From NCBI RefSeq assembly GCF_000143415.4, contig NW_003314341.1, positions 111,876 through 162,150 on the forward strand: 50,275 nucleotides of DNA. Direction: 5' to 3'. Of this stretch, positions 24,641-25,787 are shown piece after piece. The notes beneath the pieces were generated by a model. It had not been told where the DNA came from and did no database searches. It worked only from the letters and a program-made list of their open reading frames with translations. Every line of letters starts with the position of its first letter. Position 1 is the first letter of the stretch. Made by a program: the position numbers and the translations under genes. This stretch comes from Selaginella moellendorffii (lineage: Eukaryota > Plantae > Lycopodiophyta).

Positions 24641-25787
24641 TGTAGCGCACGTGGTTTTGACCCTTTATCCTATGGTGATTTACCATAGGATAACACCACG
24701 AAGCGGAACCTAAACCCTCTTTGTGCCACGTGACAGATGCCATGTGTCACATACCACGTGTCCGTGCCACGTGTCCATAGGAACCCGAGGTTCAGGGCCT
24801 TGGGCCACTGAACGAAGGAACGGTGCCAAACTCCCAAGCGTGACGCCAAGGAGTGATGAAACCGGACCACGGAGCAACTCCCGAGCATATAGCCCAAGGA
24901 GCAAAGGGACAGGAGCCCGGAGCGACTTGGAACAGTCCTAGAGCAACCAGCATCCCAATGCCAGGACCAGCACGCAAAACGGAGCCAAACGGAGTCTGGT
25001 GCTATTTCGGCATACCGGTGGCCTAACGCGAGGATATGGGTACTCCACCAACTAGCATGGAATGGAACTTGGGCTTAGACCCAAGCCGGACGCAGAACAA
25101 GGACAGGCACGCAAGCGGGAGCTAGACTATGCCTCAGGTTGGTCGGCCATGCCCGACCTACCCACTATCCCTACTATACATTTGGAACCCCCCATAGCCC
25201 CCCCCCCTTGAGGAACACACGCTTTGGGCTTTCACCCCAAGCCTCCCTTAGTATCTGGAGTTAGTCTCTGGGACAAGCTTAAAACTTACTAAATATGGAA
25301 TGTCCTTAGAATGTGAATTTGGACACAGGACGAACACCATTGTGTTCAAGCCGATCTCTACATTCCGTAGATATGCCAAATGAGCAAATCTGGACACTTT
25401 CCATAAATAGCATTTGGGACCGAAATGAGACTAACACAAAGGGCATGATAGCGAGGGTGTTTGGCAGACACGGTAAGCTATCATCTAGCGATGTTGAGGG
25501 ACCAAGCTCAATGTCGCGAGGGTTCTTATCACTAGCAAGTGCAAGACAAAACGAGACGGGAACTCCTTACCGGGCTAAGTATGCTTAGCTAATAACACGT
25601 AGGAATTCCGTCCTTATGCTCGTCCGGTCTAAGTACACTCGAAATGCCCAGTTAACTCCACTAGCACAAGAGGGACTGATAAAGGGTCCAGCAATACCGA
25701 CCTCCTGCCGTCGTGGCAGTAAGGTAAGAATATCCGAAAGGACTAGCCGACAGGTAACTTTCGATACCTGAAGTCACATTCGCGACA
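24641..25787 (-). repeat. LTR copy 1 (3'-most LTR)
   Basis: + strand TGTAGCGCAC...ATTCGCGACA, adjacent to the PPT complement CTCTCCCCCCCTT (25788-25800). Confidence 0.88.
25161..25254 (-). promoter_or_regulatory. Copy of the rDNA Pol I promoter in the LARD LTR (also 31178-31271, 37195-37288, 47245-47338)
   Basis: Reverse complement reads ATACTAA..GGGGTGAAAGCCCAAAGCGTGTGTTCCTCAA(G)nCTATGGGGGGTTCCAAATGTATAGTAGGGATAGTGGG. Confidence 0.8.

Follow-up and report, generated by a model that had tools for sequence, protein, structure and literature searches.

The question raised by this locus is why an LTR retrotransposon in a plant rDNA spacer should carry, in the middle of its LTR, a stretch resembling the promoter of the 35S rRNA genes around it, and what that stretch might do for the element. 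The window (the whole stretch of DNA that was analysed, 50,275 nt) holds two LTR families with such a stretch, here called LTR-A and LTR-B. The explanation favoured here, to which as a whole we give slightly better than even credence, is that a host-derived promoter module has been kept by selection as the transcription-start module of the LTR.

The damaged rDNA array and the LTR-B element

An rDNA array of the plant type, with the 5S gene linked to it, makes up the window. With Rfam, three genes each were identified for LSU, 5.8S and 5S, together with one complete and one partial SSU gene, all of them on the plus strand, and self-comparison indicated that all three rDNA units are damaged. In unit 1 a 7.5-kb element (element A; 6157-13687, with 1147-nt LTRs) lies inside the 5S gene, and at 16733-16741 the ETS jumps to about position 1165 of the 18S, the first ~1164 nt of which are missing. 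Unit 2 contains a repeat with a period of 6017 nt (24641-37872); as this array is fused to the ETS 275 nt before the 18S, unit 2 is without a host promoter and most of its ETS. Unit 3 carries a fragment of LTR-B (46818-47498) followed by 100 N (47499-47598), a scaffold gap which leaves the structure of the unit unassembled at that point. The parts of the LTR-B element are as follows.

24641-25787, minus strand: LTR-B copy 1, 1147 nt, 5'-TGTCGCGA...GCGCTACA-3', adjoining host 16-bp IGS repeats at 24640
25788-25800, minus strand: PPT AAGGGGGGGAGAG, abutting the TG of the next LTR
25788-30657, minus strand: interior 1, 4870 nt, non-coding, longest ORF 108 aa
30644-30655, minus strand: PBS TGGTATCAGAGG, 2 nt past the second LTR
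30658-31804, minus strand: LTR-B copy 2, at the period of 6017
31805-36674, minus strand: interior 2, non-coding, 100% identical to interior 1
36675-37821, minus strand: LTR-B copy 3, 1147 nt
37822-37872, minus strand: remnant of a third interior (its last 51 nt, including the PPT), fused to the 5'ETS 275 nt before the 18S
46818-47498, minus strand: truncated solo LTR-B covering LTR positions 374-1054, with 97.8% identity to the tandem copies and followed by the 100 N of 47499-47598

The array thus runs LTR-interior-LTR-interior-LTR. The repeat common to the three tandem copies measures 1198 nt; location of the PPT within 51 of these nt, which belong to the interior, corrected the true LTR (TG..CA) to 1147 nt (24641-25787). 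The PBS TGGTATCAGAGG is one which we take to be of the initiator-Met (iMet) type. Four ORFs of 83-107 aa in the interior were without a Pfam match, and tblastx against the coding region of element A gave no similarity from the LTR-B interior and nothing outside the promoter-like block. A chain of hairpins was absent from the LTR-B interior, where just one short inverted repeat was found, and Rfam detected no 5S-derived sequence in LTR-B, 5S being present only at the host genes (13674, 23594 and 46357). The LTR-B element is a non-coding LARD-type LTR retrotransposon of roughly 7.2 kb, which lies in the rDNA spacer in antisense orientation.

At its upstream end the array breaks off within an interior (37872/37873), and the flanks are non-contiguous host sequence in which no target site duplication could be read; this junction is a deletion breakpoint and not an insertion site. 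The three tandem LTR copies differ at 5 sites in all, and together with the identical interiors this suggests very recent duplication or polishing of the assembly. The two LTR-B loci occupy different IGS positions (24640 and about 46837), with both junctions rearranged, and the solo copy is joined to host IGS through a microhomology of roughly 16 nt at a CACGTG motif. Two metagenome scans with the block as query returned no matches, and neither a protein-word search with the 91-aa LTR ORF nor an exact-ORF look-up found further LTR-B copies.

A G-box-like motif, GACACGTGGCA, was found 59 times against 0.84 expected and reaches a very high density in the host IGS ahead of the gene promoter (13990-15712 and 47600-48932); from the 5S gene to the promoter, the spacer has 9.4 CACGTG per kb. 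LTR-A and the interiors had no match to GACACGTGGCA, and LTR-B itself has a cluster.

24724-24775, minus strand: cluster of four GACACGTGGCA motifs near the LTR-B 3' end

In the host 241-bp spacer repeats the G-box-like motif was seen to adjoin a promoter-like box.

A block resembling the 35S promoter in two LTR families

A block of 109 nt in LTR-B is homologous to the promoter of the host 35S rDNA genes over roughly -99 to +10, with the host transcription start placed by motif and position. The blocks compared were the following.

15809-15917, plus strand: host gene-promoter block of unit 1, the reference for comparison; predicted +1 at 15908
49029-49138, plus strand: host gene-promoter block of unit 3; predicted +1 at 49129, followed by over 1146 nt of ETS
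25163-25271, minus strand: promoter-like block of LTR-B copy 1, LTR positions 517-625; predicted +1 is the A at 25172
31180-31288, minus strand: promoter-like block of LTR-B copy 2, identical to copy 1; predicted +1 at 31189
37197-37305, minus strand: promoter-like block of LTR-B copy 3; predicted +1 at 37206, directed away from the adjacent 18S gene
47247-47355, minus strand: promoter-like block of the truncated solo LTR-B, differing from the tandem copies at 2 sites
6505-6614, plus strand: promoter-like block of the 5' LTR of the chromovirus (element A), LTR-A positions 349-458
12889-12998, plus strand: promoter-like block of the 3' LTR of the chromovirus

Over 110 columns the LTR-B block is 83.6% identical to the host gene promoter, rising to 93% in the core (-64 to +10), and the pairwise identities are 87% (host and LTR-A), 84% (host and LTR-B) and 83% (LTR-A and LTR-B). 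BLAST E values for the LTR-B block against host and LTR-A ranged from 1e-24 to 4e-25 at an aligned length of 109-110 nt, and 17-18 sites distinguish the LTR copies from the host promoter. A search for the initiator TATAGTAGGG gave 12 matches against 1.67 expected, with the motif on the minus strand at 25169-25178, 31186-31195, 37203-37212 and 47253-47262 and on the plus strand at 6599, 12983, 15902 and 49123. Exact copies of GGGGTGAAAGCCCAAAGCGTGTG stand in both host promoters and in all four LTR-B copies, and at up to 3 mismatches the sequence was matched 17 times against 0 expected. Host unit 3, LTR-A and LTR-B all have 60 nt between the GGGGTGAAAGC box and TATAGTAGGG (66 nt between the box and the predicted +1), and host unit 1 has 1 nt less. 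On the minus strand an iMet-type PBS follows the LTR, so the block is oriented in the sense of the element. The motif at plant Pol I transcription initiation sites (TIS) is TATATAGGGG (PMC6589552), and the initiator TATAGTAGGG of the host and both LTRs fits it, being of the TATATA(A/G)GGG type (motif: PMC6589552).

These measurements bear on most of what had first been noticed at the locus. The promoter motifs quoted then were recovered on the minus strand at the place given, and both the 66-nt spacing and the sense orientation in LTR-B were borne out, by the measured distance from box to TIS and by the placement of the PBS and PPT. The block reported at 25161-25254 is real, although the aligned block is somewhat longer (25163-25271). 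The further copy reported from position 47245 does have the host-like CTGTGGGGGG, but lies in a truncated LTR fragment adjoining a 100-N assembly gap. At this site (47247-47355) the solo copy reads CTGTGGGGGG as in the host and the tandem copies read CTATGGGGGG, a single G-to-A change; the G at LTR position 593, the host-like state, is one of the two differences of the solo block. An ETS-like AGGTCGGG just after +1 is likewise present, but is weak evidence, as chance sharing of an 8-mer was observed in 2-6% of controls. Two candidate signs of contact with the host were rejected: AGGTCGGG as strong evidence of ETS origin, given that rate of 8-mer sharing and the occurrence of the motif in the upstream repeats of LTR-A as well, and GGCTGTGGGGGG in the solo copy as conversion to the host, since it concerns one nucleotide in the ancestral state, with the G-to-A change in the tandem copies.

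Two LTR families bearing one host-promoter module, in sense orientation, with identical boundaries and spacing and otherwise almost unalignable, were thus confirmed. When the two elements were compared by BLAST at word size 7, the block was the sole similarity above E 0.01, and the chromovirus and LTR-B blocks begin and end alike, at about -99 and +10. The original statement that there is no similarity outside the block is almost right, but overlooks a weak second island common to both LTRs. Local alignment downstream of the block scored 22, compared to 13.8 +/- 1.8 in dinucleotide shuffles, none of which (0/200) reached 22. The island, GTACCCATA..CC..CGTTAGGCCA, occupies positions 748-772 of LTR-A and 745-769 of LTR-B.

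25019-25043, 31036-31060, 37053-37077 and 47103-47127, minus strand: second island, LTR-B
6904-6928 and 13288-13312, plus strand: second island, LTR-A

The second island is absent from the host rDNA and may be a shared cis-signal, for example a 3'-end or packaging signal. LTR-A and LTR-B also agree in length (1147 nt), perhaps by coincidence. That both LTRs have this further, transposon-specific island at one and the same position weakens the idea of two independent captures and makes it more credible that the block has been retained over a long time; the two families are probably deep relatives, or share the cis-signals of a helper, and are not two fully independent captors.

Origin, constraint and transcription of the block

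The proposed sequence of events begins with entry of the module into the LTRs from the host promoter lineage. The 241-bp spacer repeats which follow the host LSU contain a diverged version of the module, 51-62% identical to the gene promoter, and the LTR blocks nest with the gene promoter, to which they are far nearer (84-87%) than these repeats are, which supports transfer from host to transposon. Transfer in the reverse direction, the host gene promoter being a domesticated LTR fragment, would agree with the module edges being sharp in the host too; it is nonetheless very improbable, given that the 241-bp IGS repeats hold older, diverged paralogues of the module, that the initiator fits the pan-plant Pol I TIS and that the host core is the three-way ancestor. 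Once in the LTR, the module would be retained by selection for starting transcription there; it would set the U3/R border at the A of TATAGTA|GGG and would recruit factors which recognise the rDNA promoter.

Constraint was judged from the promoters of two host units, from a single LTR-A element and from a single LTR-B lineage, a set in which site counts are small. The 30-100 nt on either side of the block aligned at chance level in all three pairs (host and LTR-A, host and LTR-B, LTR-A and LTR-B; z -2.2 to +1.5), so that both boundaries coincide in both families. Differences from the host in the core (-64 to +10) number 3/75 for LTR-A (96% identical) and 5/75 for LTR-B (93%), compared to 11/35 and 12/35 respectively in the upstream 35 nt (66-69% identical); the contrast between core and upstream third was statistically significant (Fisher test) for both LTR-A (P = 0.0002) and LTR-B (P = 0.0004). 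The host has no change unique to it in the core, and the host core is thus reconstructed as the three-way ancestor. The block lies mid-LTR and in sense, which suits the U3/R border. Neither LTR has a TATA[AT]A box or an AATAAA-type signal, and LTR-A has no TATA other than that of the TIS motif.

Among the four LTR-B copies, 2 of the 109 block positions differ, compared to 13 of 572 outside it (P = 1), in a sample without statistical power, and one of the two is the G-to-A change common to the three tandem copies. Of the 15 differences that separate solo from tandem LTR-B (46818-47498 and 24734-25414), 12 are transitions in which the tandem copies have A or T, a pattern that looks like C-to-T decay of methylated DNA. 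Every copy seen sits in a damaged rDNA unit, one of them beside an assembly gap, and gene conversion with nearby rDNA promoters could possibly mimic constraint on the core. The earlier claim that selection acts on the shared promoter therefore stands in part: the edges, the spacing and the core gradient fit constraint, while the block in the four copies changes at the rate of its flanks (2/109 versus 13/572), one half of the outcome that the first-pass annotation had itself named as refuting it, though from a sample without power. Taken over these few sites, the identity pattern plausibly fits constraint on a working start module better than it fits a random passenger.

That the block is functionless appears rather unlikely. 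A promoter fragment could have been caught in a single event of template switching or illegitimate recombination within the rDNA, and could persist as a neutral passenger because it is young, by hitch-hiking, or by gene conversion with rDNA promoters nearby. Such a history would agree with the finding that, in the four LTR-B copies, the block and its flanks have decayed equally, the tandem G-to-A change included, and with the location of all copies in dead rDNA units, where conversion is plausible. It is at odds with sharp edges that are identical in two families whose flanks are at chance level, with the strong gradient of identity between core and upstream region, and with a sense orientation and mid-LTR position which suit the U3/R border in both families.

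If the block is a start module, its polymerase has to be considered, and for each of two candidates our support is tentative and well below even. Pol I would read the block to make an uncapped genomic RNA of the non-coding element, which the particles of a helper would package. The preservation of the whole bipartite promoter (upstream box, G-run and exact 60-nt spacing) speaks for Pol I, as do an LTR devoid of a TATA box or poly(A) signal and the existence of Pol III analogues, and the LTR-B element needs no translation; the chromovirus with the same block, however, must make a translatable mRNA, and Pol I RNA would be nucleolar and uncapped, whereas packaging is cytoplasmic. Pol II, on the other hand, could use the TATA-like initiator with upstream and G-box elements, the likeness to the rDNA promoter then reflecting origin and not present use. 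TATAGTA is the only TATA-like motif in the LTRs and the G-box cluster of LTR-B is a classic Pol II factor site, but use by Pol II would leave unexplained why two families have a host-like upstream box, G-run and spacing.

RNA data covered part of the LTR-B array. No reads from three RNA-seq raw-read runs, in which the presence of the organism is given by the species label alone, mapped to positions 26300-32299 of the window; with that proviso, and the three being cDNA libraries, this zero is no valid measure of transcription and bears at most weakly on reading by Pol I or Pol II. A fourth run, of uncertain kind, yielded six contig pieces at 95-99% identity to the interior and the U5-PBS region, none of them over the block, and pieces at this identity indicate that diverged relatives of the LTR-B element exist in some sample of the organism.

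The first-pass annotation had gone further and proposed a guild of Pol I-driven parasites of the rDNA. A reading of this kind, in which several LTR lineages (a coding chromovirus and non-coding dependants like LTR-B) would be transcribed by Pol I from a captured, co-evolving copy of the 35S promoter, seems to us rather unlikely.

Comparison with known rDNA-associated transposons

LTR retrotransposons are textbook Pol II units. The exceptions Cassandra, Helenus and Ajax have borrowed Pol III promoters (PMC10946416, PMC10886601). Cassandra, like the LTR-B element, is a non-autonomous LTR element whose LTR has a conserved copy of a host rRNA-gene promoter; its copies follow the promoter of the host (Maiwald et al., 10.1101/2023.07.14.548913; review PMC10946416), and tandem LTR-interior arrays of it are known (PMC7215508). 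Cassandra, however, is a TRIM with an internal 5S Pol III promoter, whereas the LTR-B element is large (7.2 kb, with a 1147-nt LTR) and carries an external promoter of the 35S Pol I type. Independent transcription has been shown for Cassandra, while LTR-B is known here from its sequence, and 5S-derived sequence, which in Cassandra-type LTRs includes box A, IE and box C, was not detected by Rfam in LTR-B, which is an analogue and not a member. Helenus and Ajax also resemble LTR-B in that their LTRs derive from small-RNA gene promoters (tRNA or 5S); those of Helenus are tRNA-derived, and Helenus-1_SMo is from Selaginella moellendorffii itself (Kojima 2024, PMC10886601). Both are tiny elements with Pol III promoter types, and no case of a 35S promoter is listed with them (PMC10886601).

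Other residents of the rDNA differ more widely. The R1 and R2 elements live in rDNA as LTR-B does, and R2 is co-transcribed with the 28S by Pol I (PMC12192640); R elements, however, are non-LTR, without a promoter of their own and site-specific in the 28S, whereas LTR-B belongs to a spacer LTR element with a promoter copy. Pokey (piggyBac) carries repeats derived from the rDNA spacer, which have been suggested to affect its transcription (PMC3849761), but is a DNA transposon with spacer subrepeats of unknown role, where LTR-B has a gene promoter with its start site. With LARDs the LTR-B element shares long LTRs, a PBS, a PPT and a multi-kb interior devoid of gag and pol; LARD is a structural class only, and says nothing on the promoter.

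The rDNA-derived transposon sequences tabulated in a 2024 review are 5S promoters (Cassandra, Ajax and SINEs), a 28S fragment and the Pokey repeats (PMC10946416); a 35S promoter in an LTR element is not in this table (PMC10946416), and our literature search found no published report of a Pol I promoter in an LTR element. Retention of a 35S promoter module by more than one LTR family would be the first case of the Pol I type. Were the elements transcribed by Pol I, they would stand to Pol I as Cassandra and Helenus stand to Pol III, and, if this and the Cassandra and Helenus cases hold, the LTR elements of one plant genome would use promoters of all three nuclear polymerases. Use by Pol I would also offer escape from Pol II-based silencing, would tie the activity of the element to ribosome synthesis and would provide natural diverged variants for dissection of the plant Pol I promoter. 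If the module were read by Pol II, it would mean that a Pol I promoter can be repurposed.

Element A, the second carrier of the block, is a Ty3/gypsy chromovirus with gag, protease, RT, integrase and chromodomain. Its best match in the database was only 42% identical, and the locus of this match (L001) has no block and almost no similarity at the DNA level. The Galadriel-type chromoviruses Beon, TRRT and Monkey, which are enriched in or near 35S rDNA (PMC10946416, Table 1), are Ty3/gypsy chromoviruses like element A, and the review mentions no rDNA promoter in their LTRs (PMC10946416); the LTR-B element, being non-coding, is unlike them. Element A sits about 25 nt into a 5S gene, with a 5-bp target duplication (6152-6156 and 13688-13692) deduced from the overlap of its alignment with unit 3 (46377-46381). 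It was also observed that the 12-bp repeats which precede the block in LTR-A (6245-6504) resemble the GTCCGA/GGTCGG repeats at the start of the host ETS (15923-16000), at 68-78% identity over about 45-80 nt, and these repeats may be a second host-derived piece.
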